DNA of 64,000 nt from Oculina patagonica (lineage: Eukaryota). The stretch covers positions 31,310,001 to 31,374,000 of the forward strand of contig NC_135759.1 of the NCBI RefSeq assembly GCF_052425735.1, given 5' to 3'. This document shows, in pieces, positions 93 to 52,011 of the stretch (its first letter is position 1; the number at the start of each line of letters is the position of its first letter). A program made the translations under genes and the position numbers. The notes under the pieces are model-generated. The model saw only the letters and a program-made list of their open reading frames with translations. It was not told the origin of the DNA and made no database searches.

Positions 93-677
93 CATAACAC
101 GAGGCCTCCCGAATATTTTCTACCATAGCATTTACTTCCGAAAACGACTGTGAAGAGACCACATGATCAGCGTCAGGATCACTGGCGATAACATTCAGCT
201 CATTTGTGTTTATTCTTGGACCAATTCCTATAACAAAGATGCTAACTCCCTCACGCCGAAGCACCTTAGAAGGCTCGATGACGGAGGCCGTCCCTTTGCC
301 CGCTCTTCCGTCAGTAAGAAGAACAAGCACTCTCGGAACACCCAATTCTATAGGTCTGACACCGTTATCAGGGTTATCAAACAGGTTTGTATGGGCCTCC
401 AAGAGGGCTAAGTCAGTGCGTGTACCACCACCCGCTTCGTATGGTATCGCTCCAATTGCATTAAGGACGTCTTGCTTCTTGACATAAGTGTTAAAACTAA
501 ACACTATCTTTGAGACATGGTGGTATATGATGAGAGCCACTCGAGTGCCATGAGGATATCCAATGTTGAAATATTCGCAAACCCTTATGACGAACTGGAG
601 TCCAAGTTGAAAGTTTTTTGCCTTGACGCTCATAGAAGAATCCAATACGAAGACCAGGTCGATTGGATTTTGACAAT
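93..677 (-). other. VWA domain exon of gene A
   Basis: DLVFVLDSSMS (MIDAS DxSxS), GGTRT, VLVLLTDG, IFVIGIG. Symmetric phase-1 exon. Confidence 0.95.
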
Positions 678-12286: not shown

Positions 12287-13847
12287 TACTGATATTCACC
12301 ATTGTGAAATTGCACTTACTTTGACAAGTAAAAGTTATTTTTGTAAATGAAAAAGGTAACGTCATTGATGTCACGCAGTGTTTTTTTTAGCAAACTAGAT
12401 GGTTTGCTGGTTTCTGACTATGAATGGGGGTGTGATCTTGCGGTATATTTTTTGAGCCTGACTCCGCCGTAAAACTTTTTTTTTATTTAGCAAGAACTGT
12501 GTCGATTTTCATTTCTGAACAATTGGTCGTCAAGTCGTTTGTCACAAAGAGTAGAATGTTTGTACAGCATGTTTTGGAATTATTTTAGATTCGGTTAGTA
12601 AGACGCTTCTGAAGACCTGAGCAAAACATTGGGAATGTACAGTATTAATAGGAACTTGAATGGAATTTTTCACAAGTTGGATAAAGGTATCAACTGAAAA
12701 AAATGGAATTCAAAATGAGGCTTGGATTTTGTTGTAATTAAATTTTATCGCGGATTGGATGCATAATATCACGGCTTTGAAAGTCTTCAAATAATTAGAA
12801 AGGTTCCTTTCTTCCTTTTGATCTTATTTTTATTTTCATGTATTGATTATTCGAAAGTGGTTTTCGTTGATACGAAAAAAAAACGGGTTTTCACTGAATT
12901 GCTTGAAGTATTTTTAGACGTGATAATATTGGCTTAATCAAATTACATTGTGCACGAAATATTTGTTATTCTTTTGTCTTGAAACTTTGAGGAAATTGAA
13001 ATTTTTGTTTGACAGTAGTGTATGAAAGGCATTTTATAGAACTGAATAAAAAATAAGAAACATTGATGAAGGTTATTTCAAAGATTTATTTTGCCTGATT
13101 TTGAAGGGTTTCAGGAGTTTTAAAGAGTGCTGGTAAACGGCTGTATGTTGTTTGTGATTACGGATCTTATTTAGTTTCGAACGCTCTAATTTTTGAAAGG
13201 TTAAAACAGGTTAAAACCGGGCGGTTTCATGAGTTTTTTGGGTAGAAAGGTACGGTGGTGGTAAAAAAAAATGTTTAGAAAGGAATGACTGTAGTAGCAC
13301 GTAAGTCGGAGGTTTGCGTGAGTCACGGGGTATAGTATGCGTGAGCTGGATTTCCGGCGTCATAACGGCATGTTTTGTTTACTGAAAGATACACTCGACG
13401 TTTAGTTAGCTTAGTCGGCTTGGGAAACTATTTTAAAAATGAATGTTGTAATAGTTAATTAATAGTAATCTAGAATTAACCCACTCTCGATTGGAGTCTG
13501 TTCTGGATTCGCGCTACCTTTTCGCCGCGAAGGAATTTTGTAAAATTTCGCTAGTGGAAAGAGGTACTGTAAGAACAGTATCAATAACTCAAAAGGAGGA
13601 ACTTCTTTGTAGCTCTGAATTAAGACGTATGATAAAATTTTAGAATAAGAAACTTTCGATATATGGTTTTCATATTGTTTTTGTCAATTTCCTTTTGTGG
13701 CAGATTTTTTGAGAATCAGCTTTTCTTTCGTGTGATGAAAGACACAGGACAGAACGAGAGGTGGATGAGAAAGATGCCGAAGATGAATAGGCACCGAAAA
13801 ACGACAAGAACCGTCAAGGACTTATCTTTAGAGGGCGGGGAGTTTTG

Positions 13848-14840
13848 GGATACTGTATTTCGAGGACTGGACTGGACTAGTAAAACGCGGACTAGTAAAA
13901 CGCGGACTTGTAAAACGCGGACTAGTATAACGCGGACTAGTAAAACGCGGACTTGTAAGACGCGGACTAGTAAAACGCGGACTCAGGTAAAACGCGGACT
14001 TGTAAAAGGCGGACTAGTAAAACGCGGACTAGTAAAACGCGGACTTGTAAAACGAGGACTAGTAAAACGCGGACTTGTAAAACGCGGACTTGTAAAACGA
14101 GGGCTTGTTAAGCACGGACTTGTAGAACGCGGACTTGTAAAACAAGCGCTTGTAAATCGGATAAAACTAAACGGTTTAGCGAGCGAAACAATTTGTGTTT
14201 GAAGCTCTTGTGTGTTTCTTCGACGGCATATTTCTAGCTTTTTTGAGCACTCTATGGTCTGTTTTAGCGTGGAGATGTTTTTGCAGTATAGCACATGTTC
14301 GTTCTGCAAACCCCTACTAAAACAACGGGATTGATGCTATGAGTTGTGTGCATATGTTTCTTTCTTTCCACTACTTGACGTCTGTTGAGTGCAGTCGTTT
14401 GTATTGCTCGCACGAGGTAGAACGGGGCCCGTCCAGAAATCAACAGTCAATCGTAAATAAAGGTGACGGGCCTACACGACTCCTACGTTCGTGACATTAG
14501 AATATTTGCCGTTAAATGTTTAAATTCGGTCTTTCGACCTTATTTGCTTCTGACTTCTTTCTGAGGGTACTGTTTTAATTTGGGGGCAGTATGTGGTAAA
14601 TAAAGGTGACGGGCCTACACGACTCCTACGTTCGTGACATTAGAACATTTGCCGTTATATGTTCAAATTCGGTCTTTCGACCTTATTTGCTTCTGACTTC
14701 TTTCTGAGGTTACTGTTTTTTTGAGACATTATGTATTGAAGAGAGCCGTAAGATGATTGTGGCCAAGGAATTCGAAGTGTCTAGAGGCGTTTTACAAGTC
14801 CGCGTTTTACTAGTCCGCGTTTTACTAGTCCAGTCCAGTC
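13848..14840. mobile_element. Non-autonomous DNA element with a 15-bp tandem array in its inverted ends
   Basis: (GGACTAGTAAAACGC)n array at about 13874-14155 mirrored at 14789-14840. Internal direct repeat of about 125 bp at about 14453 and 14596. Confidence 0.8.
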
Positions 14841-19300: not shown

Positions 19301-22300
19301 CTTTTTGGCAACCCAAGTAATGAAAGAGAGCGTTTTCACCTAAAACAAAGAGAATTACGCAAAGAGAAACTAGGGAGGATACATCTGTAAAAAAACAAAC
19401 AAACAAACAAAATAAAATACATCAAAAACAAAATACATTAGGCTGTAAACAAGAACTATATCTTTGGGATCCGATGTTTTATTACTACCAGGACGCATTT
19501 GATAAAGTTGGTAAATGCAAATGGAAAACATATTACAAGGAGGTTTCTTAATAGGAACTAGTGTTAAGTATCTACTCACCATTCCTAACGTAATAATGGG
19601 TGTTGCCACGGACCAGCTTAAAGCGTCGGTGAATGAGATCCAGCAGCTGATGAAAGTAATCAGAAAGAAAAATTTTGCACCACCACCATAACACAACAAC
19701 AACTAAAATGGTAGAGTATTGTTGAAAATGATTTCTATCTTCCTTGAAAAAAATTGAGAGGGAATGCAATCGACAACGATATTCGTAACAAGTAAAAAAA
19801 AAAACGAGAATCATAAAAACTAAAAGTTAGAATTAATAAATCTGATAATAAACCACGCCCATAAACATACAATAACAATTACACTGTTTTATTGCAAAAA
19901 GCTCTGTCAATGGCCAATTCTCTCTTTATGACACGCCTGCAGCGAATAAAGGTAGTTGTACTCACCGTTGCTAAGACTCGCGAGAGCTTTGCTGAATGCA
20001 ACTACCATGACTCCCTGCAGGCGCGTCTTAAAGAGGGAACTGGACATTTGTACGTCTTCCAGTGGGCTTTTTATTCATATAAATATAGTATTGTAACGTG
20101 CTAAAATGAGAAAGGCTAACTTACTGTGGATGTTCTTTGTACGACTCATACTTGGAGACAAGAATAAGCACAGCAAAAAGGGGTAAACCTGTACAAAACA
20201 AGGCAACAAAATATTGTATGGTGCATGTAAACAATACTGAAGTACCATAATAGCGGAGCTGTACAGCGGCCCGCAGGGCCGCAGAGCAGAGCCCCATACG
20301 CATGAAAGAAGGAACACTGTCGAAATGAGTTTTCATTGTCAACATGGATAGCGGCATGGTTCGCGGGCGCGTCCGTACGGCGTACGGCGTACGGAGTCGC
20401 GCAACATGGCCGCCATAGTTTGATGGTAGAAATAGTGAAGCAAGAAGGCCGTATAAAGGCGGCCTGTAAAATTTAAAGAGGTTTGAAAAGAAAAACAAGA
20501 AGCAATGAAACAAAATGTGGCTGAAAATTACGTGTAGAAAGTAATCGACCGCCAAAAAAGTGGACATTGAGAGCCATAATCGATCGATGACTTTCGTGTC
20601 TATCTGTAAAGCCAGCATCGTACATGAAGGAGCATTCGAAATCTAAATCGGGTTGATATGATAAATTAACAAACCATTTTATTGCTACGGGGTAAAAAAA
20701 AAAGGAAAAAAGAAAAAAAAAACTTGACCCTCTGGGATTTGAACTCACGACCTCCGGATCCTCAGACTGGCACCTTACCGATTGAGCTAATCCGACAGAC
20801 TCTGTGACGCACGTTGAATATATCCTATATCAATGTAATAGATATTGTGGAGTCTACTAAACTGCTGCGAAACTATAACAGGATCGCGAAACTATTTTCT
20901 ATTGCTAGAAAGCAGATAATTTACTGTACTCTAAAGTAATTTTTCGTGCCATGAGTAATGATTTTGCCCCGCTTTAAGATTATTATTTTTGTCGTACTGC
21001 TGACATTCAGTATAACCGTGAGCTATTTAAATTTGTGTCGCACCTATAAACCGCCATAAACATTAGTACTTTGGCCGCTTATTCACTAGAATGAAAACAT
21101 TGTAAGCTCCAGTGAAAATTAAATAAATGGGGAGCTCCGCTTTTAGGCTTGCCTAAATCTATATAATATGATTATATAACTTCGTTAAACTTGACATAAA
21201 TGTATTTTTCACCAATTTTCATTGCTTTAAATCGTTAATAACTCCACTCACCCCATGCACCTCCGTAATACAGTTTCATTATCATTTTCCGCTTCACCTC
21301 GCTCTCACGCTTCCTGGTAAAGGAAAACAGGTAAAGAGCCTGGACAATGAGCCAACAGAGGGTGACGAGAGAGAGATAGTTCATGGTAATGGCCACAACA
21401 GCACAGGCAATCTGAAACAAACAAGGTTGGTAGAACAAGGTTTGATACTTAAGATAATAATATTATCAAAAATCCATTTTCCTATCAAATCACGAATTCT
21501 ACATCATCATATTGATAAAATCTACCTCATTAGTGTTCTTTATAAAAGGAATATCAATAACATGGTAGGATACTTGCAAACTAATTTTCTGCTTATTTTC
21601 TCCACTTACAAAAAAGCGTTGTTGTGAACTTTTTAGCAACGCGCTGCTTTGAGAATATTTACAATTTACCTTGACCATCTTAAGTAATGATAATTATCAA
21701 AATGGCTTACTTTTTGGCAAAAATATGGCAACATCCGCCAAGAGGATTTTGGGTCAAATTCCATATTCAAAAACAGTTTTCTATCGACTTGGTGTTCGTT
21801 ATGAAAATGATCTATAGCAAGGTTATACAAAGTATATAAACACCTACGGTATTATCTCTAGCATCTGCTCCGGCCAGGAATAAAAGCTGCGATGCTAACA
21901 CACAAAAGGCTTGACTCATTTGCATATCTCGTTCAAATCGTCTGTCCCTGTATAAAGAAAATGATTTAAAATTTGACCAATATATAAATATTCTGCTGTT
22001 GCTCATCACATTAAAGGTAAGTAATCAAGGTCCGGAAAGTACAACATTTTTACTTTCATTCTTCATTAAGTCTTCCTTGCATAGAGGGTCTCCAATTTGT
22101 GTTTCACTCTGCGGCTCATCTAGAGATATGTGCTCTATATCAAAGAAATCCTAGATTTACGTCTCCTAAAACCTTCCAGGAGTTTCACATTTTGTCGTTA
22201 ATAACTCTTGCGCCCACTCGATGCGCGACAACGGAATCTACTGAATTACAACCCGTCATTTCTGTTACTGTTGTTATCATTTTTTAAATTAAAGTATGCC

Positions 22301-25300
22301 AAATGCCTAACGGTTTGAAGAAGGCACGTTTATAAATGCATTTGATAAATTGCTCAATTTTTTTTAAACAGCGTTTTTTTTTCTTGCCAATAACTTAAAC
22401 ACAAAACAAAGAAACGAACGAAGAAACGTCCGTACAGATGATTTATTTACCTCATTTCCTGACGATTTTTGTCACTTTTCTCCTTTTCCTTGTCAGATGG
22501 CTTCTCCTCGGTGCGATTCTCGGTTTCACCTTCCAAGATTAAGAATGTGAAGCAAGGACACATGACTGCCATGACCTTACGCCTTGTGATTTTTGATTTC
22601 ATCCGGAGCAGGAAACTAACTTTTTCCTTCTCGTTATTTCTTACTTCAGTTTCGTTCTTTTCAATATCAACTTGTTCCAATTGGTTTTCAACCTTTGAAG
22701 TCTTCTCTACCTTCTTGTTAGATGAAGATGGCTGCCATTGAAAGCAACAGATTGTTTGTTTTTCTGATTCGCTATCGATGGCTTGCAACTCTTTTGCATG
22801 TTGCGGTAACTCCTCTAAGCCGTTTGAAACCCTTTCTTTTTGAATTTCTTTCGATGTCACAACAGATACTGAGACACTTGTACTCCTAACCTTTCGTTTG
22901 ACACCAGAATGGCTTCCTTCATTACCTGGTGCTTCTGACGTTACTGTCTGTTCTATTAATGTGTCTTCTCTATGTAAGTCATAAATCATCGAAGAAACCA
23001 AACTGCCGTGACGCGATAATTTTCTGTGCCGATCTTCACTTGATTTCGGCAACGTGGCAGTTTTCTTGCTGTGTACCATTTCCTTGTTTGCAATTTTTTG
23101 TCCCCGCTATGACGTTAGCCTTTTTCTCAGCAACAAAAATCGCACGAGTTTTTTCTTTCTTAAGAAGCTTGGTCTCTGCACCAGAGACATTTTTTGATGT
23201 TCCACAAGTTGATCCTTGCTCACAGTCCTCTAATAAAGGAGTGAGACTAGAACGATTTTTAGTGCCCTGATACTTTTCATCATCGTCTCCTTCAAACGCC
23301 TTGTTATCTGCCGAATTATTGTTTTTCGCCTCCTCTTTCTTCTTTTTCTTTTTAATCTTTGTTGAGCCTTTGATTTGAAATTCCTTTGCACATCTGCAAT
23401 GAAGAGCATGATTTATCATTAGTGACATTATTTAGCACGATGCACGCCCCACCTTTACTGAAGAATTTAAAAAGAAAACGATTTTTCTTCTAGGTTTAGG
23501 ATCACAGTTAAACCCCGGATTTAACTATTCTGGACACCCATAGACCCTTAACTCGTACAATCATTGAGCATGCTATCAATTTAAAAAAATGAAAATAATG
23601 GGAACATTTTCCAGATAAGTTACTTTAAAAGTTACCTTGTTCACATCCGTCCACGTACATCATCAAATGTTATTTTTAATGGAACACACTTTAAGACGAT
23701 AGTTTTAGCATTAACCAGTTACCGTTAGATATTTGCAGGTACAGAGAAAAATAAAGATCCATGCAAACAAGTGCATGCTTTGTTTGGAATTGAAGCTGTC
23801 CCTTACTTTCCAGAAAACACAATACTTACGACAGTGTAACCACAGCTGCTACTGTTGCTGTTGTACCGATGGTTGCTACAGCCGCTCCAGCGTAAACCTT
23901 CTTAGGAATCGGAAAGGTGGTATCGTTTCTCTCTGTGTTTTCCGTGTTGTTCTGAGTGGGAATCTGAAAGCAAAATTTAAATGATGCATTTACATTAAAA
24001 ATTCATTTAAGAGAACGTGGAGCAAAGCAGGTTGATTACTGTTGAAGTAAATGAAATGACAATTTATCAAGGTCTTTGGGAAAAACACGTCAACAACGTG
24101 TTCAGGAAACGAAAGCCCGAAAAGGAGTGTAGAATGGAGTGGGTCGTGGGCGAGCGGTTTTTTCTAGCTTCTCCTTTATGTGAGTACTCTAAAGAAGCAA
24201 TTCTGTTTTTTTTTTAAAGAAAATAGTTTAACATGTCACAGCAACTTTATGATGGAATACAAAAAAAAAAACAAACAAACCTGTTTTTCTACCGTGACAT
24301 TTGTTCTAATGAGATCCTTGAAGAGCGTCAAATTGAACGTGTTTGTCTTGTTAAATCCTTCGATTGAAACGTAGAACCACCTGCTGGTGCACGTTTTCAC
24401 ATAAATGATCAATCCTTCCTCACCGAATTCGTCGCTAGACACAATGAGAGGCTTGGTACAACCTCCATTAATAGTAGCATTACAAAAAGTACTACTTTCA
24501 AGTTCATCCAATTCCCAAATACGATCAGTGTCAGCAAGCTTGTTGCTTTCACGCGGTGCACAGGATCCAAGGTTAAGGCGACTATTTCGTGGGTTCCTGT
24601 TGCTCGTCGAAGCTGAGATATCAGTCATTCCACGGGTTGTTTGCAGAAATATAGTCTTTATCCCTGTCTTGTTTAGTAAGTCGTATTTATAATATTTTAT
24701 GGCATTTTGCTCCACACTGGACATCACCTCTCTTTCTTCCTCCAGCACAGCGGGTTCTTGAAAGTTATGGACGAAAAAGAGAAGATGTAGATGTAACATA
24801 ACAGAAATGCCTTTGACGTTAAGTAATAACCTTAAAGGTGCTCTCATACGAAGGGGCATGTTACAGGAACACGATGCAGCAACATGTAGCAGAGGCAAAA
24901 TCACAATGTGTGCAAAATCAAAAATTGTACACTGGCACAATAGAAAGGAAGCAGCGACATCTTACAGCGAAACGTACCCTGAAAAGAGTCAGCATTCACG
25001 CGCGAACACGCCGCAACATGTCCCGCTACAATTTATTTGTGATATGTGTACAGGTTACATGTTACTGCGATATGTACCCCCTTCGTATCTTAAAAAAAAT
25101 CATGTTTGCAGGAGGAAAAGCTGCTCGTGCACGTGCACGTGCACGTGCTTGACCAGTTAAGTTCAATAAAACGCAACGTTTACGGTACGGCACGGCACGG
25201 AATGGCACGGTATGACATGGCATTGACATGGGGTGGCATAGTTTCTCTGAAACGAGATGATATATGCCATGAACGATACTCACCATAACACGAGGCCTCC

Positions 25301-28300
25301 TGCATATTTCCTACCATGGCATTTACTTCCGAAAAGGACTTTGAAGAAGCTACATGATCAGCGTCAGGGTCACTGGCAATGATGTTTAGCTCATTCGTAT
25401 TGATGTTCGGACCAATTCCAATAACAAAGATGCTAACCCCGTCTTGCCGGAGCACTCTAGAAGGCTCGATGACGGAGGCTGTTCCTGAGCTCGCTCTTCC
25501 GTCAGTGAGAAGAACAAGCACTCTTGGAACACCCAACTCTATAGGTCTCACGCCGTTATCAGGGTTGCCAAACAAGTTTGTATGGGCCTCTAAGAGAGCT
25601 AAGTCAGTGCGTGTACCACCCGCTTGGTATGGAATCGTTCCAATTGCATTAAGGACGTCTTGCTTCTTGACATAAGTGTTAAAACTAAACATTATATTTG
25701 GGACGTTATGGTATCTGATGAGAGCCACTCGAGTGCCATAAGGATATCCAATGTTGAAATATTCGCACACCCTTACGATAAACTGTAGTCCAAGTTGAAA
25801 GTTTGTTACCGTGACGCTGCCAGAGGAATCCAATACAAAAGCCAAGTCGATCGGATTTTGACAATCTGTGGGAAAATGGAACATGGTAAATAATCCTATT
25901 GTTTTAGTCAAATGTTCGGACTGACTTATTCCACTTAATTGATATAACTTGTCTCCTACGAATTGAGTAATACTCGATCCAAAAGAAGATTAAGGTTCGT
26001 TCTTTACGAAATAAACATTTTATAGTTATTCTGCCGAGCAGTCTCACTCAAGAATTCTTTATAATGGCATCTACAACGTACAAGAAGTAGACGCTGTCTC
26101 TTAATGTCGCATATGTCAGTTTCTACTGCTATCAAATGCTGTTACTACTGCTATCAAATCCTGCAAGGGAAGCTTGTCTAAAAAAATTCCTGCAAGCGGT
26201 TATGCCTAAAAAAATGCATGCAACGAATGTAAATTGTCCTACAAGCCCCATTCGGTTATTTCTAATGGTCCGTCCCTAAATACAAGTCATTACCAAGGCA
26301 GCATGTGATTGGTAAAGTTCCAGGACATCCTGTTGCAGAATATTCTCCCTTACAGCTTGTCACCAATTTACACGTTCCTTTTCTTTTGCCAACTGAACAG
26401 CTTGGACCTTTCCCTTTTGACGGACATGGAAGACCAAGTACCTGTTAATACATGATGAACATAGATATTGTAAACGTGGCTTCAATGCAAGATTGTACAA
26501 CATCCATATTCCCTTTAGTATTTTTTTTTGATTTTATCATCATCATCATCATTTATTAGCCACTTCAGAATTAAACATACAAAATAACTTAAAAAGATAG
26601 GGCGAGGAGACCTCCAAGAAACCACAAGGCTTATAGAGCAGGCCACCTCGGGTTGGCTACAACGATGAATCTTTCCGGTTTATCGGCGACGGTCATAAAA
26701 AACGTTATACCTATCGTTTAAATGTTCCTGCCTTTTCCCATTTTTTACCATTGTGGTAGTAATAAAAAACCCTCCAATTCGTGAATTCTTAAAGACCTGG
26801 AATCTACAGTCCGGAGAATTCTACCCAAATCGATTGCGGATTCCGTGCACCCGACAGGCTCCCGATTTGCACACTTGTATGGTTTGCCTAAGACCCACAT
26901 AGAACGTCTGGCTATGCGCCCCATTTTATCTGCCACACAAACGTACAATTATGGATTGGCGAAATGGCTAGAGGAGAAGCTACAACCTCTGTCCTACAAC
27001 CGGTACACAATGACCGACACCTTTGAGTTTGCAAACGAAATTCGCGAGTTAAAGATCAAAGATGGTGATGTCCTATTATTGTCGTATGATGTTTCCTCGC
27101 TATTTACCAATGTGCCGCTGGAGGAAACCATACAGATACTGGCAGACAAAGCGTTTACAAACAACTGGTTCAATGAAACACACCACTTAAACCTCAGCAG
27201 ATCGGACCTCATAGACCCGTCCTCAGAGCATCCACCAAAGACCAGCTGTTCCAATTCAATGGGCAATTGTATGAACAGACCGATGGCGTCGCCATGGGTT
27301 CGCCACTGGGACCAATGTTGGCAAACGTTTTCATGGGTTACATCGAAGAAACTCTTGAGCGTGAAGGTAAAATGCCTTCATTCTACAAAAGATTATACCG
27401 TCGACGACACCTTAACCATCATGCCTGATCTAAAATCAGCGGCTACGTTTCTTCAAGTCCTCAATAATTGCCATCCATCAGTAAATTTCACCATGGAAAC
27501 AGAGAAAGACCGAGTGCTTCCCTTTCTTGGTATGCAACTGCTGAACAGAGCCCCTAACATCGAGACCAAGGTTTACATAAAACCTACGAACACAGGTCTT
27601 TTGCTCCACTACCAGAGTCATGTTGATATTCGATATAAACGAGGGCTCCTGAAAACCATGCTTGATCGTGCATATCGCTTATCATCGTGTTGGTCATATT
27701 TTTCCGAAAAATGTGACCGATTGAAAGCACTGTTCTCCCGGCTGAAATATCCGGAAAAGCTCATCAATACCACCGTCCGTTGTTTGGTTAGTTCAAAGAC
27801 CGAAGATCGACAACCAATATAAATACCAGCCACTGGCGAGAGTCCAACAGTTCGAATAGTACTACCATTCAAAGATCAGGATTCTGCAGATTTTGTACGG
27901 AAACAACTCAACGAACTAAGCCAGAAAACTCGCACAGTCATTCAACCAGTTTTGTTAGCAACAAAATCGAACAAAAGCTTAAAGTACAAGAGAAAAACCA
28001 CCTATTGTAAACCAGTAGTGTGTTGTATACAGATTTCAATGCGACTTGTGTGATGCAAGTTATGTAGGATATACACTGAGGCATTTACACCAGCGCGTGG
28101 ACGAGCACAAGAACAATACATCATCTATTGGCAAGCATAATAGAGACAAGCACTGTATTGTCCCGAAAGTCCTTGACAAACAGTTTCATGTCATCAAGAA
28201 GTGCAAGAATAAGTTTGATTATGGCGAGTATTTAGTGCATGAAATGCTACTAATCAGAGAATTGCCACCATCTCTAAATGTCCAATCAGACTCAATCCGA

Positions 28301-31300
28301 GCCAAACTATTTGCGTGACATTGCATATTTTAAATAATAATAATGGATTGATGTGTGGAGAGAAAGAACTCAGAAAAGAAATTCTGAGTTCACAGATGGG
28401 ACTCGAACCCACGACCTTCCGTACACTAGTCGGACGCTCTAACCACTGAGCTACTGTGAACTCTAATGGTGAGCAGTAGTCATTGCATATTTTATTATGT
28501 TAATCTTAAGCGAACTTTTTCTGAAAGTTTATTCTTTTCATTTTTTGTTAACTTGATAATGGAGTCATGACGACTCCGAAACGTCGTTCGTTATTATCGT
28601 TTATTTTTACTTGCTTGTGTAATTCTTGTTTTAGGGTTAAAATAATCTCTTGTGACTGTCTTCAAAATAGAAACGGTTAATTTTACCGTGAGCGTATGTC
28701 GCCAGTATTGGAACAATTTTTCGATACCAGCTGTACTTTGCTGAACATTGATAGATAATTGCGCGAAGCCGTATTCAGTTCCATTGCAGAAGTTCCCTAA
28801 GTTCCCAGTGGGCGAGCTGCTGTTGTCAGCTGAGCTATATCCATTCGTCCATAACCACGCAGCAACATGGAATCCAACGGAAGGAAACGCCACAATCTCT
28901 GGCTGACCTGCAAGTGCATTATAAAAAATAATTCATCTAAATACTACCCATTTCAATTGATAAGAGAGAAGACGAAAGGAAAAATAGCGGAAGTTTTCGT
29001 GGTGTCAAATAAACGGACAGCGGTAAGCCTTTATTTTGGGTTGCCGTACGAAAGCTAGCTAGACCAATGAAAGACGACAAATCGAAACGGTGTATTGGCT
29101 GTTTACAATGCGGGATATTGCCGTTTTTGCACTTTTTATCATCTTGTTAAAAAAGGAAATATTGAAATGAAAGTCAACAAGTTCAGACATACAGATGGTT
29201 CTTAATGGTCCAATCAAGTCTGTCAAACAGAAACTAGTGTCAATTCAATCTCCCTAAACAATGATTTAAAGAGATAAGGATTGGACTGGTTTGAAAAATC
29301 ATAATTTGGTTTTTGTTGGCCTCAATGAAAATCATGCTTAGGCCGACTTGTATGAAAAGGTAACTGGTCACTGTTTGGAAAACCTCTTTTTCAATAGCAG
29401 AATTGACGTGCTATATATTTCATTGCCACCTTAAGGTTTTGGTATCATGTAAAAATTAAGGCAGGATTGACCAAAAACCACGTCTGTTTAGTAATATTTA
29501 AATAGGTAATGATATATTTAAGTGTATACTTACGGATAATGTTGTTATTAATCGAAGATTTTGCAAGTTGGTACATGTGTTTTCCAATCAGAGGCAGAAA
29601 TCCTCGACTGATGTACTTGCGTGCATCAGCCTCTTTAGTATTTCCCAAGTTTTCTTTTCCTATGTATTCCTGTCCATCAGAGCTCTCCTCAGAAAAATTC
29701 ATTCCTGATGTTTGATATAATATCTAAGGAAAGAGAGAGTACTGTTAATGTGCTAGTTGATTATTTATCTGTGGTAAACAAAAGAAGTTCAGCATTACTT
29801 TTGATTGTGGCAAACATATGACTCCACGTTAACTGAATGGAACATTGAAGTGGAATACACTAATAAACCAAACCATTCAGACCGTCGTGCCTTCTTGCGG
29901 ATGCTTTGTTTCTCAGAAATAAAACATAGATCTTTAATCAGAAGGGAAACTGTAATGGAAATACGAAGAACTTTGCATAGGTATTTTCGAGACGCTGCCA
30001 TGTCTAGATCATAGGAGTATTAAAAATTGAAGGGTGCATTCCATACAATGGTTGATAATGTTTATTATGAACGATAGGAACTTATAGGGAAGGAAAGAAA
30101 CCAAAACGAACTAAACAAATAAAGTAATATGGATAAATTTGAAAATTTCCTGTTCTCAAATTCATCAACAGCTGAGCTTGAAATCATGAAGGTGCATATC
30201 CTTTGGATACTATCCAAAATATATGCACCTTTATAGTATACTGTGGAACCTCGATTTAACGAACCTCTATATCGCGAAGTCCTCGATATAACAAAAGATA
30301 TTCTTCGCCTCAGTAATAGTAAAATATATGGAAAGGTACCTCGATTTAAAGAAACCTCGTTATAGCGAACATATTTTGCCAGTCTCTTGGCCCTTCGTTA
30401 TACCGAGGTTCCACTGTACTACAGTTATGGGTGCGTAAGAAGCAGCTTAAAATTTTTCTTTAAACTCACTTGTGCAGTAAATGCTGCTATTTCTTGTCTG
30501 TTCGTGATCCCAGCCTCACTCAGTGCTTGCATATAAAAAGGATATAATGCCCTTGTCCTTGTTGTATCCCCAACCATCTTCAGGTAAGAATCCAGAGAAA
30601 CATTGATGTTTTGCGGGATGTTAGGAACTATTGTGCTATCCAAAATACAGCAAACAGTGTTTTGGTCCGTGAGGGTTGAATTTCTTAAGGTGGCTCCTGG
30701 GCAGTCTCTAGCTTCCATGTAGTAACCACGGAAATATGGAGAGTACTTTGAGTAACACTTTAGGCAGTCGATTTTTTCTGTAGCGAAAAAGAAGAAAACA
30801 ATTTTCATAAGCGCTTTACCTTTCACCGGTGTGAAACATAATTAAACAATTGCTTCAACTTTGAAAGAACCTTGTTTGAAGATCCCTAATCTATCCAATT
30901 TAGCACAAAGTGTATATCAAAAAAATTGTAATAATGATTAGGCAAATCTGTCTGAAGCGGTTCTCTTACTTAGAGGTGGTATTTATTAAACAAATAATTT
31001 AGTTTTTGTTTAATTTATGGATTGCGCCGCAGTAGGGAAGAATATTCCTTTGTCAACTGGATTGAAGCTAATTGCAAAATGTGAATTAATTCGCGACGGC
31101 GGCCGCCGCCGTGTAACAAACGACCCAAAATGTCCCATCCATAAGTTTGTAAATCGGCAGCACGAGAAAAAAGCTCATCCATACCAACTGAATACAATTC
31201 GTTAAGTTAAACCAAGTCAAAAAGAACCGAAAATCAGTGAAAACCAACTGAAAGTTTTAAATTTTACATGCGGACTTTTCAATGATAAACAATAACAGTA

Positions 31301-36678: not shown

Positions 36679-39600
36679 TCAAGCGTTTACATTTGATTCG
36701 TTGGTTTCTTCTTGTAAGGGTTCTATCGCTGTATTAAGTTTTCCCTTGTTGTTCTGTTTCGGGCTTTTGTTTGTGACTCTTTGGTGCTTCCTCTTTTTAT
36801 TGACTGGAATCGTGACGGGAGGCAATTTAACTTTTGCAGACCCTTGGCTGGGTTCCCTGGAAAGCCAAGCTGGCGATGGGCATCGCGGCTCACTGTTAGT
36901 GCCATTAGGTTTGACGACTGCTTCTTCAGCCGAGTAGTGGTGACCGTTCTCTTCAGATCGGAGACTGGGATTAGCAGTAACACCATGCAACCGGCTGTTA
37001 GTGGTGTCATCTGAGAGCGACATCATGTTCACATCCTTAAAAATATATTAAAAAAATAATGATAAACAATCAGACGGCTAGCCTATCGACCATTAATGTA
37101 CCCCAAACAAACCGATCACACAGAACGCGCTACTTTCAACGTCTACTCATTGCCGCAATAATTAAACCTTTTCTGAGTGACCATAATACAAATGTAGGGA
37201 CATCATCGCATAACAAGGAAAACTAAAAATGTCCTTACTGGACGATTTTGCAAGTTTTGTGCCAAATTAAAACCTTCTGTTAAAGGGGCAGTGTCACGAA
37301 TGAAGTCTTCTAAGTTCTTGTGTAAACAATGCTAGAATTATGAACATGCACTCGCGGATCAACAAAATAACCTTTGAAGAACTAAGGAATAAGGCATAAA
37401 ACCATTCTCCAAGAAGTGAAAAACAGTTATCAATGGTTCTTAAGTAATTTTCTTCCAAGTAAAACTGTCAAACTTGATGTTTTCAAGTTTCTATAGGCCA
37501 TTTCTTTTCCACCAGCCCGTAACCACACCACTGTTTAACCATTTTAATGACTTGTTAAGTTAAACGTTTAAGCAAGGTCAGGCCACCATAATTGGATTTG
37601 AAGTTAATACCAACACCTTCATTGGAGTTTAAAGTAGCACTAACTATAGTGACACTGCCCCTTTAAACAGAAAATTAACAAATATCGAACATAATTACCG
37701 ATATTGTAGCTCCATGGGATGTTGGAGCAGCAGCATTAGAAGAAGGAGTAAGTGACGAAGGTGAGAAGAAGGTTGTTCGACGGCTGGACCAGATTTCTTT
37801 CTTTCGCTGCATTGCCTTCCGTACCTTAACAAAAGAAGACAGAGTAAGAAAAGTATCCCGTATAACACCTGGGAATTGTTTGAAGTACGAAATCATTTGT
37901 CTATTCCGCGTAATTCTCCCAACAGTTCTTTCATGTGTCTTAAGCCGCCTTCACACGACAGCCAGTTATGGCCAACTCGAGTTGGAAAACTCAAGTTGGT
38001 GTGTGTTAACGACGCAACAACGTAAAACAAGTTGGCCAACTGTTGGCGACAAAAAGAACTTGTCTCTATTCTTACCAACAGTTTGCCAACTGTTGTTGTG
38101 TCGTTTACACACACCAACTTGACTTTGCCAACATGAGTTTGCCAACATGAGTTTGCCAACTTTAGTTTGTCGTTTGAATGCCACTTTAAAGTTCTGTGTA
38201 ATTCCATATTGCTTTTTGCACGTTTTCTGTATCTTTAATACAAAAGTTAAAAAAATGTAAATTAAGTTATCTAGGATACTGACAAAGAACATCAAAATTC
38301 AAGAACAAAGGTCGCATTATCTTACCTCTGAGTTAAGTAAACAGTGAAATATGAAAATGAAGAATCCTTGCAAGGAGTTGAAAATGGCAAAAAGGTACTG
38401 AAACGCGATGGTGTTACTGTCCAGTGCCAAAATACCAAACAGCCACGTAATGCCGAGTAATGGAAAGAGAACGACTGCTGACTTGACTCCAGATCTGATG
38501 ATTTGAAATTAGAAGTAATCAGGTTTATTAGAATGTGGGCGGAGCGTTTCAAGGAGCCTCTAAACAGACCATCCCCAGATGACCTACCAGCAGCCAAAAC
38601 AGTACGAAAACCAAAATGGCTTTCGATCAGAAATGCAAGTAGGTCATTAAGGAATGGGAAGACAATGTGTTCAGATAGCAGGGAATGCAAGCAGCCATGT
38701 ACAAGAAAAACGAAGAATTTTTGACATTTTATAAGAAATTTAATAATGGCATACTTTGCGTGCCTTAAAAAAATCATACCTATCCTACTTACTTGACAAG
38801 GTCAAACTTTGTTGAATGAGAGACTCCATTTGTTTGTATCTTAATGATCTCTCTGATGACCATGACAATGATTACTGTATTAACCTTCAAGACAAAGTGA
38901 TCAAATAATTAAACAGTTTGCCATTTCAGGCACCAGATGCTGGAATTGTAGGCATAATAGTGTCCAGTAATGAGCTCGCACGAGTCCTGGCATGGGGCTC
39001 TGAGTAGCGCTTTTGGGAAGCAAACTAGGACTATAAACGTGTACCAGCAAAATTTTAAGGTCAACTTGACTGAAAAGTCGGCGGTTAACTGGGAGGGACT
39101 CAGAGCAGACTATATTGTGGGGGACTTTCAATTCCTACTCGCTTCATAATACAGCATTGAATAATTTCCGGTAGTGCCACTTTTGTTCGAATGTAGACTC
39201 ACTTGTTCGCTCAGAACATACTTGGAAAACAGAAGTGGATCAGTGATCAGCAGATGATGAGTACCTCAGCAGGAAGTTTTGATGAACACGGAACGTTAAG
39301 CTCTCAATGAAAACTTAAATTAACATTGTAGTTGTAAAGGAATGCCCACACAACCGCTTGGTATTCTTGGTCAGTATATTTCTACTCACCAGGATTATCG
39401 CCAATGCCGGTCCTACAAAAGCATAAATAACTCCGTTTGCCACTGACAGCCAGCAGCTAGGAACAATAAGACGTTCTAAGTTATTTGAATAAGAGATGAC
39501 TAATGGAGAATTTTCTTAATTTAAAAAAATGAGAATAAACGAGAACAAGATTGCTTTGCCCTTATCAAAAATGAAAGATTTGTTTCATCTTATCCGGTTG

Positions 39601-42600
39601 GACACACTGAATGCAGTTACTGGTGTAAACCGGTGTCGACCGGCTGAACCCTTTATAAAAGTTTTGTTGGGACAAATTTGTCAGGAACAGTAAAAAAAAA
39701 AAAAAAAATGATTGCCTTCCTTCGAATGAGTGCCTTCCGTTTGCGTGAGAGTAATTCGTGTTTTATACCTGGAGTCTGTGCCGTAACCATCATGCGCAGT
39801 ACTGGCAGCAATAAGAACAACAATTCCAGGCAAACCTACGAAGCAACATCAAAACATTCACACGGTTTAAAACCTTTGTTGGTAATTAATAACCATTTAT
39901 AAATATAGATAACAGTATAGAATTGTGCGAGGCACATTGACGTTTGACCAGCAACCTGAGACGTATCTGTATAAAAACCACAAGTGCATTATTATAAACC
40001 TGATTATTAATGATCATAGCAATAAATTATTGGTCTTACCATATGCGCATAATCCATACATACGCAGTTGTTCTTTGCTGTTTTCGAAAACAGTGATGAC
40101 CATAAGGTAGAGATACACGCCTTCAACTAGCATCCACGCAAATGACACCAACAGAAAATAGTGAAGTAACACCGCTACCAGCGTGCAGGCAACCTATAAG
40201 AGGAAATTGAATAGATCGAATTTTGAAATCGTAAGTTAATTAAATCATCTATCTGAATCACTAATACGAACAAGAAGATGACGAAGAAGAAGAAAAATAA
40301 TACCTTATGCAAAAACAGCAGCAGCAGAATCAAAAACAACAACAATAGCACTAACAACAACAATAACAGCAAGAACGACGACGATAACAGCAACGAGAAC
40401 AACAACAAGAACAACGTTGACAATAAACAAGGGCAGCCGGGACACCAACAACTAACACTGACAAGAACAACAACATGAAGAAGGCAAACCTCTCCTAACC
40501 TCTAAGGATAGAAGTGACACTTACTGATAGCATGTCGTAAACAAAGAATAACGGAAACCCATAAACATGGTTAGTTTACGGTTAGGATTAGGGATACAAG
40601 TTAGCGATCGGTTGTTTGGTTAGAGGTTAGTGTTTTTGGTGGTTAGGATGAGCTTTTGGAAGAGTGTTTCGGACTGTTCTGGGATGTTCCGGTGTTCCCG
40701 GTTTTACTACATGCCCTTGTTGATGATATGTTGGTCTTAAAAGTACTTTTTGTCGATTAACAAACCTCATTACTAGTTGCTTCAATTCCTGCCAGGAAAA
40801 TTACTTGAAAGATCCCGATAGACAGCGCCAGGTTTAGGTGAATAAGGTTTCTCTCTGAACGCACACCGCTGTGGAGTATAAATGAATATATCCCAAATTA
40901 TATTAAGCGAACCAGCACGTCTGTTACAGTTTTTATCTTTTAAAGGTTCTTCTGAATTTTGCATTATCTGAAAAACTCAGAAAACATTATTTACGAGTTC
41001 CAGATAGGATTTTGAACACACGAACCCTCCGTAATCCCTGTAATCTAGTCGGATGCCCTACCTTTGAGCTACTGGAGACTCAATGGTGTGCAAGGGTGAA
41101 ATTGATGTGGGTCTGGACTAAAACCGCATCACGCAGTCACATAGTCAAATCAGGACAGGCACATATGACCCATTGTTGCATCACGCAGTTACTTTAAAGC
41201 AAACCTGAGATGCAACCATCCAACCACCAAGTAAGTCTTTCTGAAGAAAGACTATATTTCTTCAGAAAGACTCACTTCTGAATTAAAAGCTTAAAAAATT
41301 GACCATCTAAAATGATAAGGCGATCAAATAACTAAAAAAAGTCGAACTTACGACAAGCAGGAGATGATGACGACTGTAAGGGCGACTCCAACGAGTGACA
41401 ATCCACAGCCGACGTAAGTGATGATCTCTAAAGCTACAGCATGGGACTCATGCACCTAAGAAAGGAACGTCCGTCTTTTTATATCATAAATAATGATGGG
41501 GTAGAGCAGTTACTCAAACAACATTTGCGCGCACGGAAGTTTTTTTTGCCCACGGAGACTCCCGTGTTAAAGGAGCGAGAACGCTCGTGGCAAAATTTAA
41601 AATGAAACCTCAAAAAGGAGCCCACTCTGAGCGTGGCTCAATCTCTATTTGACCCCTTAGACATTCTAAAATAGACACACAATTAAAAGCTACAGTGACT
41701 AAAATGGCAATAAAGACATTGTCGTCAAATGCTTATACATATATAAAAAATTTTGAAGCTTTCATGTGAGATTCTCAATCATCAGCACGATACATCGGCG
41801 GTCTTTAGTTTGTTGCGTGCAATTAAGAGATACCTTGCTGACTACAAACATTTGCGTTCTGTCCTGAACACCCGAAGTTAGACCAAAATCTACAGTTAAC
41901 ACCATTAAAAAAGGGACCACGAGCCGGCATCCTCGCCCCTTTCGCAAGGAAGTTCCCGAAAGTAGAGAATTACACCATCACATACGAATATTGTCCAGTT
42001 AGGATAAGTACAAGTAACTATATGACCTTATTTCATTACCTCCAGGTCTGAATCTGACGTGACCTGCATCAGCACTGCAAAGTTTGTGAGATGATCGCAT
42101 TTGCAGACGGAATGTGTTTCATTTGAAGCAGAAGCATCCACCTCACATCCTTTCGTTGACCACAATCCACTGCCGTTAACACTCCTAAAAATATCGCGAG
42201 AGTAAATTTTTAGTGTGGTTTAATCTTTGTGACGTGTAAACTCACGTTTACTTTTATCCAATTTTGTGTCAGTGTTAAAGGTAAGTAATTCACCGTGATT
42301 GAAATTCTCAGTAGTTTAAAGCAAAAATATGCTAATCCAGGATAAGCTTGAATTTTGATTACAGTTTTACGACTGACTTTTCAGTGAGATTTTCTGTTTA
42401 TATGAAATTTCTGTCCTCCAATTTTGACGTTGTCTGGTCACAAACTCTAAGAAGCAGTGGCAATGAAAAACGCTTTTGCACAAAAGAAGTTAATGAACTG
42501 TTAAAGCTGGGTTTTTGTTGATTGGCCTTCAAGCAACCCGCCCCACGTGATTAAGTTTTATTTATTTTAATCAGTATTGACAAATTTGCAGAATATCTTC

Positions 42601-45600
42601 GGCAAACTTCCGGCTATCTTCGAACGTCATCGCAATTTTTTTCCAGTAAAAAACTTCGCGATAACTTTGGAATTCTCTTAAGGCTAATTTCCTTGCTGCC
42701 GCGCTGCGGTTATCTTTGCTTGTTTGCTGATTAAATCCAGATCACACTCACCCTCCAGTGAAGTCCCACCACACACAGACCGGCACCAGCGTTGCATTTG
42801 ATTTGTACTGAAAAAGTCAACATATTATAATTCTTCTCACTGGTTGTTTGTCTCACTGACAACAAACACAACTGAAACTGCAGTTCTAGTTATAATAAAC
42901 AAACCAATAATCCGTCTTCACTAAGCTTGGGCACTGTAAATTTTTTTTGTAACTGACCCTTGCTTCTTCCGTTTTGTGCTGGCGTCGAGTTCTCTCGCCG
43001 TTCTCACCGCGCGCTCATCGATCGAAAAAACACGAAAAAATAGAGGGCTGTGGACGGTCTACTGAAAGCGCAAACTTTTGGTTCATTGGGTAAAAAATAG
43101 TATCATAAAGACTATAACTCAAGAGAAACAATTTTTGTTGGAGAGAAAAAGTTATCTTTCATACTTGTATTCTTGATTCATGTAAAAAAAATAAATTCCA
43201 TAGCATACACATCTTCATTTGTCAATCCATAGTGGCACACTTACCTTCACGTGTTGAAGGGTGACACGAACATCCAGCTCTTGACTATGAGCTGCCGGCG
43301 GGATCACAAGACTTCCAATGACGCGGCTGTTAAGCTCGTAATGTGCATTTTCGCTTTCTTTTTCACTGAAAAAGCAAAATAATCCGAAATATGTTTTATT
43401 CTGGAAATACTTATACAATACTAGATCGCTAGAAAAACTTCACGAAATTAAATTGCGTATAATATGTTTAAATTAAAGGCCTGTATTACTTCCTTGAGGC
43501 CACACACGCATGGTGAGTAAGCGAAAATACATAAGACGATTGAACACTACACGAACTTTTAACAGTCAGGAGGACGAAGGAAAATGCAAATAACTGTTTT
43601 GTGAAGTATTTGCTCACATACTCTGCTTGTTGGAATCCATTGGATAACAACTATACTTACTTTGCGACCTCTGCTGGAGTCGATGGCAACATTTTATGCA
43701 AACTCTTGTAAATGACACTAAAAGCCTTTGTTTTGTTCCGAGGTCCTGTGAGAAAAATGTTACCCATTAACCTCCGCAGTTCCAGATACACAGCTCAGTG
43801 AAAGAGCGCGTGAATGTGAAATAATTCAGCAACCAATGCAAATGTTAAATCATCAAAATTAATAACTCGTTGCAATATTCATATAATAAAAATTGTTCCT
43901 GGTTACTATTCGACACTCACCAGCCATTTTCAAAGTAAGGAAATCGTTAATCCCTTGCCAGTTTTTGTCCATGTTGGACATTGAAAATCTGTAGTTATCA
44001 GACAACACTGATGCCTGCAAAGCTAATGCACAGAAGAGACATTCAGTGTTACTAGTGTTATAATCTACAATTCATGACAATTATAGATACTAAAACTTAT
44101 TTCCATTTGTTGACTTTACTAAGTGTGTCCGCTGCTAGCCACATCGACAAAACTTTGAGATTAATATCAAGAGTAGTCGAAATTGTTATTCTCCTTACAT
44201 ATTAAGAGAGATTACCTGGCAGTCTGGGGATTAGATAATAAACATGTAATTAACTTGGTTACATCGTTTTCATCAAAAACCAAGTTGAAAGAATTAACAT
44301 CACACAACAAAAGTAGGAGTATTGTGCAGCGAATATAAGAATATTCTAACAATAAAGCTTTTGGGTGAAAAAGGCCCATGAGAAAATAAAATGTTCTCAC
44401 CAATGTTGTCCTCCGATGAGCTAACTGGAGATGTTTCATTTGACCATTTGCCAGCCAACCCTTTTCCAAATAACTCTGTGATCTCAGCTATCTTAATCGC
44501 TAACGTTTTGTTAGACCGACGCCACTGCTCTTTATTTTTGTCCTCCATAACGTCATTTATAGCCTCTGTGCTTTCCTTGCATTTAAAAAAAACAAAAAAC
44601 AAAAAAAAAGAAACAAGGAGTCAAATGTTAAATAAAGCAACAAAAACAAAAACAACATACACTTTCCTTTTCGGCCTTCCCCAAAGATTGTCTTTCTCTC
44701 ATCTCAAGAGGCAGAAGGAAAAAAAAAACCGAAAGGCCCATTTACACGGCAGAAAATTTGTGGCACGGCTCTGATAAAATTGGTACGCGTACCAAAAAAA
44801 TAGCACTGATATCCTGTTTACACGTCCATTTTTCTACCGTGCAAAACTGCGTTACTGATAATGTTTTGGTGCGAGTAAAAGGCTCAACACCTTGTCCAGC
44901 GTACGCAATTCTGCCTTAGTACACATGCCGCTATTTCGTTTAAACGTCAAATACGAGTCGCGCATCTTTTCGGATTTTTCCCAGAAGACTAGAAAAGGGT
45001 GAATGTATATGGTTCTTGTTCAATTGGCAGTAGTGATGGCTTGTACCTCCCCTATTAACGACGACGATTATTTTCTTTACTGTTTTATTCTCCTCGCCTT
45101 ATTTGGATCAACTCCTTACATCATGCTCTTCCAAGGCAGAATTTAAGCTTTCGACTCTGGACACTAAGAGTCGAAAGCTAAAATTCTGCTTGGAAGAGCA
45201 TGATGTAAGGAGTTGATAGAAATATGCGAGAATAAAATAATAATACAAACAAATAATCGTCGTCGTTAATAGGGGAGCTACAAGCCATCACTGCTGCCAT
45301 TTACTGCTGCCATTTGAACAATAATCATATACCTTCACCCTTTTCTAGTCTTCTGGGAACAAGGCGAAAAGATGCGCGACTCGTATGTGACGTTTAAATG
45401 AATAAGCGGCATGCGCATTAAGGCAGAATCGCGTACGCTGGCCAAGGTTTTGAGCCCTTTACCCGCACCAAAACATTATTTAACGCAGTTTAGCACGGTA
45501 GAAAAAAGTACGTGTAAACAGGGTATCAGTGCCATTTTTTGGTACGGGTGCCAATTTTATCCGGGCCGTGCCAAACTTTTTTTGCCGTGTAATTGGGGCT

Positions 45601-50015: not shown

Positions 50016-50054
<39 letters not shown>

Positions 50055-50181
50055 GAGCTTGGTGTGTGGCGGAAATGACGTCACACGGCCGCCGCGCGCT
50101 GGTGGCCTAATGGTAAGGCGTCGAACTTGAAATCAGATCTTCGGAACTGAGGTCGGGGGTTCGAATCCGGCTAGGGTACGT

Positions 50182-50212
<31 letters not shown>

Positions 50213-51965: not shown

Positions 51966-52011
<46 letters not shown>

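Follow-up and report, generated by a model that had tools for sequence, protein, structure and literature searches.

The window analysed here is a stretch of 64,000 nucleotides (nt) of the stony coral Oculina patagonica (contig NC_135759.1, positions 31,310,001 to 31,374,000 of the forward strand, or G000:C2:31310001-31374000 in our handles), numbered from its first letter. The element studied is a 943-nt stretch of its minus strand, 22451-23393, which lies in a receptor gene between the exons for the first and the second transmembrane helix (TM1 and TM2) and corresponds to intracellular loop 1. The parts of the locus on which the analysis depends are the following:

23830-23966, minus strand: TM1 exon, coding for the hydrophobic first helix; it ends ..AGAAVATIGTTATVAAVVTL followed by tc, with the phase-2 donor tc/gtaagt.
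23394-23829, minus strand: intron of 436 nt with GT..AG ends; RNA joint 23393/23830, no depth in runs X1, X5 and X9, covered by the DNA run X14.
22451-23393, minus strand: intracellular-loop-1 exon, 943 nt here and 942 nt (314 codons) in related samples.
23336-23392, minus strand: conserved stretch adjacent to TM1, CAKEFQIKGSTKIKKKKKK, with a Cys and, after it, a polybasic run; K12, I13, K14, K15 and K17 are near-invariant (alignment A3).
23042, minus strand: extra frame-shifting base, the c in gaaatCaag, which creates a TGA at 23038-23036.
22960-23025, minus strand: conserved island RKLSRHGSLVSSMIYDLHREDT, basic residues before serines, then a short helix.
22852-22899, minus strand: conserved Ser/Thr cluster KRKVRSTSVSVSVVTS; R49, T52 and S53 are near-invariant (alignment A2).
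22729-22749, minus strand: CCFQWQP motif with paired cysteines; C98, C99, F100 and P104 are near-invariant (alignment A2).
22525-22626, minus strand: basic-then-hydrophobic helix EKVSFLLRMKSKITRRKVMAVMCPCFTFLILEGE, with about 25 charged residues between the helix and TM2.
21948-22450, minus strand: intron of 503 nt with GT..AG ends; joint 21946/22450 (cut +1) in X1, X5 and X9.
21849-21947, minus strand: TM2 exon, /g (R)DRRFERDMQMSQAFCVLASQLLFLAGADARDN, aligning to residues 921-957 of the Pocillopora verrucosa protein P0033.
21250-21411, minus strand: TM3 exon, IACAVVAITMNYLSLVTLCWLIVQALYLF.., matching Pfam 7tm_2 profile positions 75-122 (27.1 bits, E = 3e-6).
L002 ~1340-2281 (G000:C2:31306866-31307813), just upstream of the window: loop-1 exon of the tandem paralogue A, whose other exons lie at 94-3213 of the window, minus strand.

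The loop-1 exon is bounded by the acceptor cag/A at 23393 and the donor AG/gtaaat at 22451. As assembled it contains two overlapping open frames, A (23431-23039, 131 codons), which continues the reading frame of the TM1 exon (..VVTL, tc/), and B (23106-22450, 219 codons), which runs on into that of the TM2 exon (/g DRRFERD). An open stretch of at least 196 codons occurred in none of 20,000 shuffles of the exon, and the longest open stretch in the flanking introns was only 57 codons; the sequence observation made in an earlier note on this DNA, which had proposed a very large cassette exon here, is therefore correct as written. Equally, the exon has phase 2/2, and its omission would keep the frame (VVTLS-DRRFERD), as had been stated there.

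RNA evidence came from the assembled contigs of three runs (X1, X5 and X9), belonging to three studies and carrying three organism labels. Run X14, the contigs of which cover all bins, introns included, was treated as DNA. Because the runs are contigs, exon usage was not ranked by depth. The joint 23830>23393 was present in X1 (record 7) and X5 (record 18), and the joint 22451>21947 in X1, X5 and X9, both with GT..AG ends; in X5 the alignment at the former halts three bases short owing to a synonymous ctg>cta change. The next joint, 21849>21411, connecting the TM2 exon to the TM3 exon, was found in X1 and X5, and a single 1157-nt contig of X5 (record 17) carries the TM1 exon, the entire exon 23393-22450 and the TM2 and TM3 exons. 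Both splice sites of the proposed exon of about 314 codons are thus exact in RNA contigs, and the exon, far from being never included, is spliced in across the contigs of X1, X5 and X9. The joint expected from skipping, 23830>21947, was absent from the contigs of the three RNA runs, which may miss rare isoforms. In the P. verrucosa orthologue the exon is present in four of four RefSeq isoforms, which vary elsewhere. These results speak against the suggestion of the earlier note that splicing switches between a compact and a long-loop receptor: a constitutive loop is the best reading of the exon, and the splicing switch is unsupported.

The assembled exon is one base too long for a single frame. 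The earlier note had proposed to repair it by deleting one C from 23102-23105, which does open the frame on paper but is the wrong site. Homologues stay in frame A up to ..HVAE and read ..HVAE-I-[NS]-EDR.. in one frame, and the alignments with X1 and X5 (both RNA) and with X14 (DNA) each leave out one base, 23042. Both findings place the true break at 23042, and a repair at 23102-23105 was ruled out. Base 23042 lies four bases ahead of the TGA at 23038-23036; when it is dropped, gaa atc aag tga becomes gaa ata agt gaa gat cgg (E I S E D R), and frames A and B join into an unbroken exon of 942 nt and 314 codons. At the site matching 23042 the tandem paralogue A reads ..CHVAEINEDRQRK.. in a single frame. 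The base is outside any homopolymer, whereas every intronic 1-nt difference from X14 sits in a T run. No second haplotype contig was found in the assembly searches, in which only the gene and its tandem paralogue matched, and an exact look-up of the two open reading frames (ORFs) that exist only with the frameshift returned no record, a negative without diagnostic value. Literature searches on the sequencing technology of the O. patagonica assembly gave no useful result.

The exon belongs to a gene for which annotated relatives exist. The P. verrucosa proteins XP_066015404/5/7/8 align to it exon by exon from 30817 down to about 10500. In tblastn comparisons the TM2-TM7 exons in the window were 50-100% identical to P0060 (ACROYT_G007000, an O. 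patagonica 'hypothetical protein') and 43-82% identical to P0033, the weakest segments overlapping stronger ones. The Pfam family PF00002 (7tm_2) matched P0033 with 91.4 bits (cut-off 20.6) at profile positions 45-248 and P0060 with 89.9 bits, and in both full-length proteins Pfam reported a weak Glyco_hydro_19 match, VWA (1e-24 to 1e-40) and 7tm_2 (7e-26 and 2e-25). By these matches the gene codes for a seven-helix receptor of the secretin type (Pfam 7tm_2) in a stony coral, its predicted ectodomain consisting of a GH19-like and a VWA domain. Since neither P0033 nor P0060 gave a Pfam match to GAIN or GPS (E <= 0.01-0.05; divergent GAIN domains can escape Pfam), it was filed as a secretin-type seven-helix receptor and not as an adhesion G protein-coupled receptor (GPCR).

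Placement of the exon in intracellular loop 1 was supported by predicted topology and by the position of the Pfam match. The hydropathy profile of P0033 predicts a signal-like N-terminus, TM1 at 656-674 and six further spans, TM2-TM7, at 931-1138; nothing else stands out in it but a marginal hydrophobic run of 14-15 residues within the insert. In XP_066015404 the insert occupies residues 676-923, between ..AAVVTLS and DSRFERDMQ, and the 7tm_2 match (7e-26) opens at profile position 45, residue 937 (TM2), directly past the insert. Both put the insert between TM1 and TM2, as the earlier note had it; with the ectodomain outside, the connection between TM1 and TM2 is cytoplasmic, so the exon codes for intracellular loop 1. 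Another isoform model, P0034 (XP_066015405, P. verrucosa isoform X2), is without the 26 residues GVAFFLFYVLLNEKVRQLILSVWEWK, which are most of TM7, and would for that reason not be a seven-helix receptor.

In a search of the whole 529-Mb assembly the copy in paralogue A, about 25 kb away, was the sole other copy of the exon in its own genome (83.6% DNA identity). P0060 is 100% identical to several exons at 94-3213 and to L002, and is therefore the model of this paralogue. Compared with the studied gene (gene B), the paralogue A copy has 2 additional nt near the equivalent of window position 22707 (~22700-22708). An A-type-looking RNA contig (X1, record 5) has +3 at this break and continues to the normal donor. 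The P0060 model is in the wrong frame for the last 23 residues of the insert (935-957, VRRRLQRLKTNWNKLTLKRTKLK) and then uses an internal GAA/GTAAGA donor to reach TM2. Automatic gene models evidently mishandle the loop-1 exon when the assembly has a slip of 1-2 nt, ACROYT_G007000 being an example, which makes the locus useful for checking assembly and annotation quality. The ratio of non-synonymous to synonymous substitution rates (dN/dS) between the two copies was 0.42 in the true frame and 0.86-0.92 in the wrong frames (Fisher p = 5e-5). The alignment placed indels of 15, 9, 12, 2, 1 and 8 nt, of which those of 15, 9 and 12 nt are in frame; the 8-nt gap, at the 3' end of the exon, proved to be a one-codon difference when the alignment was re-read by eye. 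The codon comparison shows the signature of purifying selection on the exon.

Gene C (36679-55757) offers a view of the same position in an unenlarged state. Its loop-1 intron, as the earlier note had pointed out, has phase 2 at the equivalent place (tc/gtaagt ... cag/c GVRSERN; region 40866-41350), is about 480 nt long and has no exon inside, and its loop 1 stays normal and short. An intron of the same phase that is free of an exon indicates that the loop-1 exon arose within a pre-existing intron. Any exon born in a phase-2 intron must have phase 2/2, so the symmetry needs no skipping and is no evidence for it.

Homologues of the exon were collected with an exhaustive HMMER search, for which its second half was used, and with a word-index search that added further ones. 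The former yielded 12 cluster representatives at E <= 1e-3 and the latter 15 more at 90% clustering, all of them open ORFs of 113-404 residues with 39-69% identity; one large cluster derives from Tara coral metagenomes. Nearly all of these ORFs start ..C[AV]KEF and finish ..E[IVM]R, followed by a stop within the donor site; they are the same exon as read by a bacterial-style gene caller. The earlier note had proposed a comparison with paralogue A and with orthologues, and the equivalent exon was indeed found in paralogue A as well as in other corals. At least five other coral contigs have a homologous open exon of 186-404 codons at the same place in the receptor, and wherever a contig was long enough to be checked, receptor exons adjoined it. 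Contigs L007 and L008 have the TM1 exon upstream and the TM2 and TM3 exons downstream, L009 has the upstream TM1 exon, L004 and L006 have the downstream TM2 exon (L004 also TM3), and L002 has the TM1, TM2 and TM3 exons around it. In the most distant case, P0012 (L004), the TM2 and TM3 exons are only 53-59% identical to the Pocillopora and Oculina proteins, which indicates that the loop-1 exon is old. We infer that it spans both major stony-coral clades. Annotated full-length relatives were limited to P0060 and the Pocillopora proteins (within the cluster of a short representative).

Conservation within the loop is uneven. In alignment A2 (23 sequences) conserved islands sit between indel-rich, poorly conserved linkers. 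The islands are CAKEF.IKGS.KIKKKK, which adjoins TM1, NRSSLTPL, [RK]..S-LVSSMI..LQREDT, KRQ.TSTSVSVS, CCFQWQP and EK.SFL.R.K.K.T.RK..A..CPCFTY.IL. In the SLVSSMI..LQREDT island M18, I19, L22 and R24 are invariant and S13, L14, V15, E25, D26 and T27 near-invariant across the 23 sequences; in the CPCF helix K140, R146, K148, T152, R154, A158, P162, C163, F164, I168 and L169 are near-invariant. Some lineages are without whole islands. Pocillopora has neither TSTSVSVS nor CCF, and Pocillopora-like contigs carry, besides P0009 (263 residues), a second and shorter version of the exon, the P0011 cluster (186 residues, 46 members), which is also without SLVSSMI..LQREDT and keeps both membrane-proximal ends. 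This shorter version may stem from a paralogue or reflect a difference between species. Throughout the lineages, the two membrane-proximal ends alone are retained.

With alignments as input, AlphaFold2 gave no secondary structure for the first 116 residues (mean predicted local distance difference test score, pLDDT, 57.6; predicted template modelling score, pTM, 0.11) and a mean pLDDT of 51.8 (pTM 0.20) for the last 196. The one confident element is formed by helices at 139-150, 153-160 and 162-176 (pLDDT ~81), corresponding to the basic-then-hydrophobic CPCF segment, and a weak helix was modelled at residues 14-20 of the SLVSSMI island. Charged residues (K, R, E, D) make up 36% of the loop. 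The hydrophobic run of the CPCF segment is about 14-15 residues long, with a Kyte-Doolittle score of 1.91 over 15 residues and 1.23 over 19. Predicted to be mostly disordered, the loop combines short conserved motifs with one confident helix shortly ahead of TM2. Pfam detected no known domain above its cut-off in either exon half or in P0001, P0006 and P0012, a profile of alignment A2 had 0 matches among PDB sequences at E <= 1, and the ESM Atlas returned only one match at chance level (0.75).

Taking these observations together, we hold with good confidence that 22451-23393 is a genuine exon, in every transcript seen, of a coral 7tm_2 receptor, the loop 1 of which probably acts as a docking platform. 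In this reading the exon was born inside an old phase-2 intron splitting intracellular loop 1, and a loop of a few residues grew to one of about 314. Parts of this putative cytoplasmic platform are probably held at the inner membrane face by the polybasic stretch and the conserved cysteines (C-A-K-E-F, CCF, CPCF), probably through S-acylation. The Ser/Thr clusters that follow basic residues (RKLS, RHGS, KRK.RSTSVSVS) are probable kinase targets that would control partner binding, and the CPCF helix may be embedded in the membrane beside TM2 or rest on it. The loop would then take the role that long third loops or C-tails have in other GPCRs. Of all GPCR loops, intracellular loop 1 is shortest and varies least; it lies beside helix 8 and the G-protein interface. 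An insert of about 300 residues at this place should alter the contact of the receptor with G proteins, arrestins or kinases, and it offers a natural test case for the tolerance of loop 1. The exon also marks a family of coral receptors whose ectodomain combines GH19-like and VWA domains and which may serve to sense chitin or microbes.

Several points weigh against this interpretation. The loop-1 exon is frameshifted in this assembly, and the copy in paralogue A is frame-broken as well, by +2 nt at a different place. X1, X5 and X9 were called RNA by guess, their nature being shown by spliced contigs and empty introns. Contig assembly drops rare isoforms, so that 'always included' means that no skipping was seen: inclusion is shown as the main form, and minor skipping may occur. 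The docking, lipid-anchor and phosphorylation functions were deduced only from motif conservation and composition, and the 14-15-residue CPCF helix might dip into the membrane. A more far-reaching version of the interpretation, which we consider unlikely, makes loop 1 the main cytoplasmic signalling arm of the receptor (lipid-anchored, phosphorylation-controlled, 250-400 residues) and has both O. patagonica copies truly frame-broken and rescued by exon skipping. If true, loop 1 would have replaced the C-tail or third loop in this role, and the exon would have been caught becoming optional.

Base 23042 is, on balance, probably an assembly artefact or a non-representative consensus rather than a real allele. 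That it is real in the sequenced animal is a somewhat less probable but serious alternative; the gene would then be a null or decaying allele or, unless the exon is skipped, would make a truncated single-pass protein consisting of the ectodomain, TM1 and a 118-residue tail ending at 23036. A real base would fit its position outside a homopolymer, unlike the intronic 1-nt differences, all of which are in T runs, the derived state of the window at 19 of the 24 paralogue-polarisable differences (binomial p = 0.007), the broken frame of paralogue A in the same assembly and the lack of a second haplotype contig there. It is at odds with its absence from all three other data sets covering the site. 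By a hand tally the changes in the window lineage are about 12 non-synonymous to 7 synonymous, an omega near 0.44, which equals the long-term value and gives no sign of relaxed constraint. Both breaks, moreover, coincide exactly with paralogue indel differences, as we infer would result from cross-mapped reads in polishing, and the other exons of both genes match the Pocillopora protein in single unbroken tblastn segments with no second frame. Broken frames in both paralogue copies would be tolerable if the exon could be skipped. This would suit a regulated cassette, with cells making either a compact receptor, its loop 1 short (VVTLS-DRRFERD), or the long-loop form, as would the symmetric phase 2/2, which keeps the frame on skipping, and the existence of class B receptors with alternatively spliced loop-1 inserts, for example calcitonin receptor CTb with 16 residues (PMC13470297). 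The skip joint was seen in 0 of 3 RNA runs, however, 4 of 4 RefSeq Pocillopora isoforms carry the exon, the symmetry is forced on any exon within a phase-2 intron, and the conserved motifs and purifying selection point to regular use, so we regard a regulated cassette as improbable.

The position of the CPCF helix leaves room for a different topology, in which this helix is membrane-embedded (in-plane or re-entrant) and the loop is a membrane-tethered module, not a free cytoplasmic chain. A confident helix with about 14-15 hydrophobic residues (Kyte-Doolittle 1.91 over 15), basic residues on one side, acidic ones on the other and two conserved cysteines would be in keeping with this; but the run is too short for a full span, its 19-residue score of 1.23 compares with 1.4-2.5 for TM1-TM7, and one extra span would invert TM2-TM7. 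We consider a membrane-embedded helix of this kind doubtful. Hardly any weight can be given to the idea that the stretch is not protein-coding, whether exonised junk, a retained intron piece or a separate nested gene. Its charged, low-complexity composition, the want of relatives in Pfam, PDB and the Atlas, and the frameshift in the assembly could be taken that way. Against this, RNA splices both of its ends to the TM1 and TM2 exons, dN/dS is 0.42 as compared with ~0.9 in other frames, more than 25 homologues, with identities as low as 39%, keep the stretch open and share invariant motifs, and the flanking TM1/TM2 receptor exons are always present. A constitutive coding exon for a long cytoplasmic loop 1 is thus the reading that we retain.

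Haplotype differences around the exon are unevenly distributed. Its central part, 22765-23253, differs by 4-6% from the X14 DNA contigs, the flanking introns by only 0.4-0.7%. At 19 of the 28 listed sites the other samples carry the paralogue A base; most of the derived changes therefore lie on the window haplotype. Several of the changes are adjacent pairs (22626/7, 22831/2, 22910/1, 23111/2). One source considered for the divergence of the central part was gene conversion from paralogue A. The other samples have the A base at only 8 of the 36 A/B differences in 23023-23216 and at 9 of 28 in 22795-22942, and their contig shows no insertion matching the 9-nt indel of paralogue A; on these grounds a simple conversion tract was rejected. 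At 21765-21883 X14 has two contigs, with 1 and 6 differences from the window, which indicates that the sampled animal is locally heterozygous (~5%). Patchy haplotype divergence appears to be normal at this locus.

Two further elements were noticed nearby. One intron of the receptor gene holds, on the plus strand and so in antisense orientation, what is probably a Penelope-like retroelement (26845-28318): a 325-codon ORF with reverse-transcriptase-like motifs (26845-27822) and, after it, an ORF (28046-28318) in which a GIY-YIG-like motif is present. A minisatellite at 13663-14330 lies in a large receptor intron (between matched exons at 16365 and 10810), and its units read KTRTS / RGLVK on one strand and PRFTS on the other, giving long spurious ORFs on both strands.

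The sequence of the loop-1 exon is already in databases through automatic annotation, in Pocillopora and, partly in the wrong frame, in Oculina, and the feature is undescribed in the literature searched. The models that already contain the exon are those of the orthologue, XP_066015404/5/7/8 ('uncharacterized protein'), and of the paralogue, ACROYT_G007000. Full-text literature searches for long first intracellular loops in GPCRs returned nothing relevant, and no counterpart of about 300 residues was described there. The calcitonin receptor isoform CTb has an alternatively spliced insert of 16-18 residues in intracellular loop 1 before TM2 (PMC13470297). The two cases are alike in that both have an extra exon in loop 1 just before TM2 of a class B/secretin-type receptor (PMC13470297). 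They differ in that the coral exon, with 314 codons (186-404 in relatives), is 10-20 times longer and occurs in every transcript seen with conserved motifs and a helix of its own, whereas the CTb insert is optional. Set beside CALCR CTb-type inserts, the coral exon has the loop-1 position, but only transcripts that include it were seen, in contigs that can miss rare forms, and its length is outside the range of 16-29 residues.

The beta isoform of the CRF1 receptor, another class B receptor, carries a 29-residue insert in loop 1 that is reported to change coupling. It shares the location with the coral exon, but is small, optional and restricted to mammals, and has no sequence similarity to it. 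Adhesion GPCRs such as gene C have in common with the studied receptor the 7tm_2 core, a large ectodomain and the phase-2 loop-1 intron; the differences are that this intron is without an exon in gene C and that the studied receptor is without a Pfam GAIN/GPS match. Long disordered third loops and C-tails are known from other GPCRs (muscarinic, adrenergic), where Ser/Thr clusters and basic patches serve phosphorylation-dependent docking. Although its location differs and no homology was found, the coral loop resembles these in being cytoplasmic and predicted to be disordered, and in carrying clusters and patches of the same kinds.

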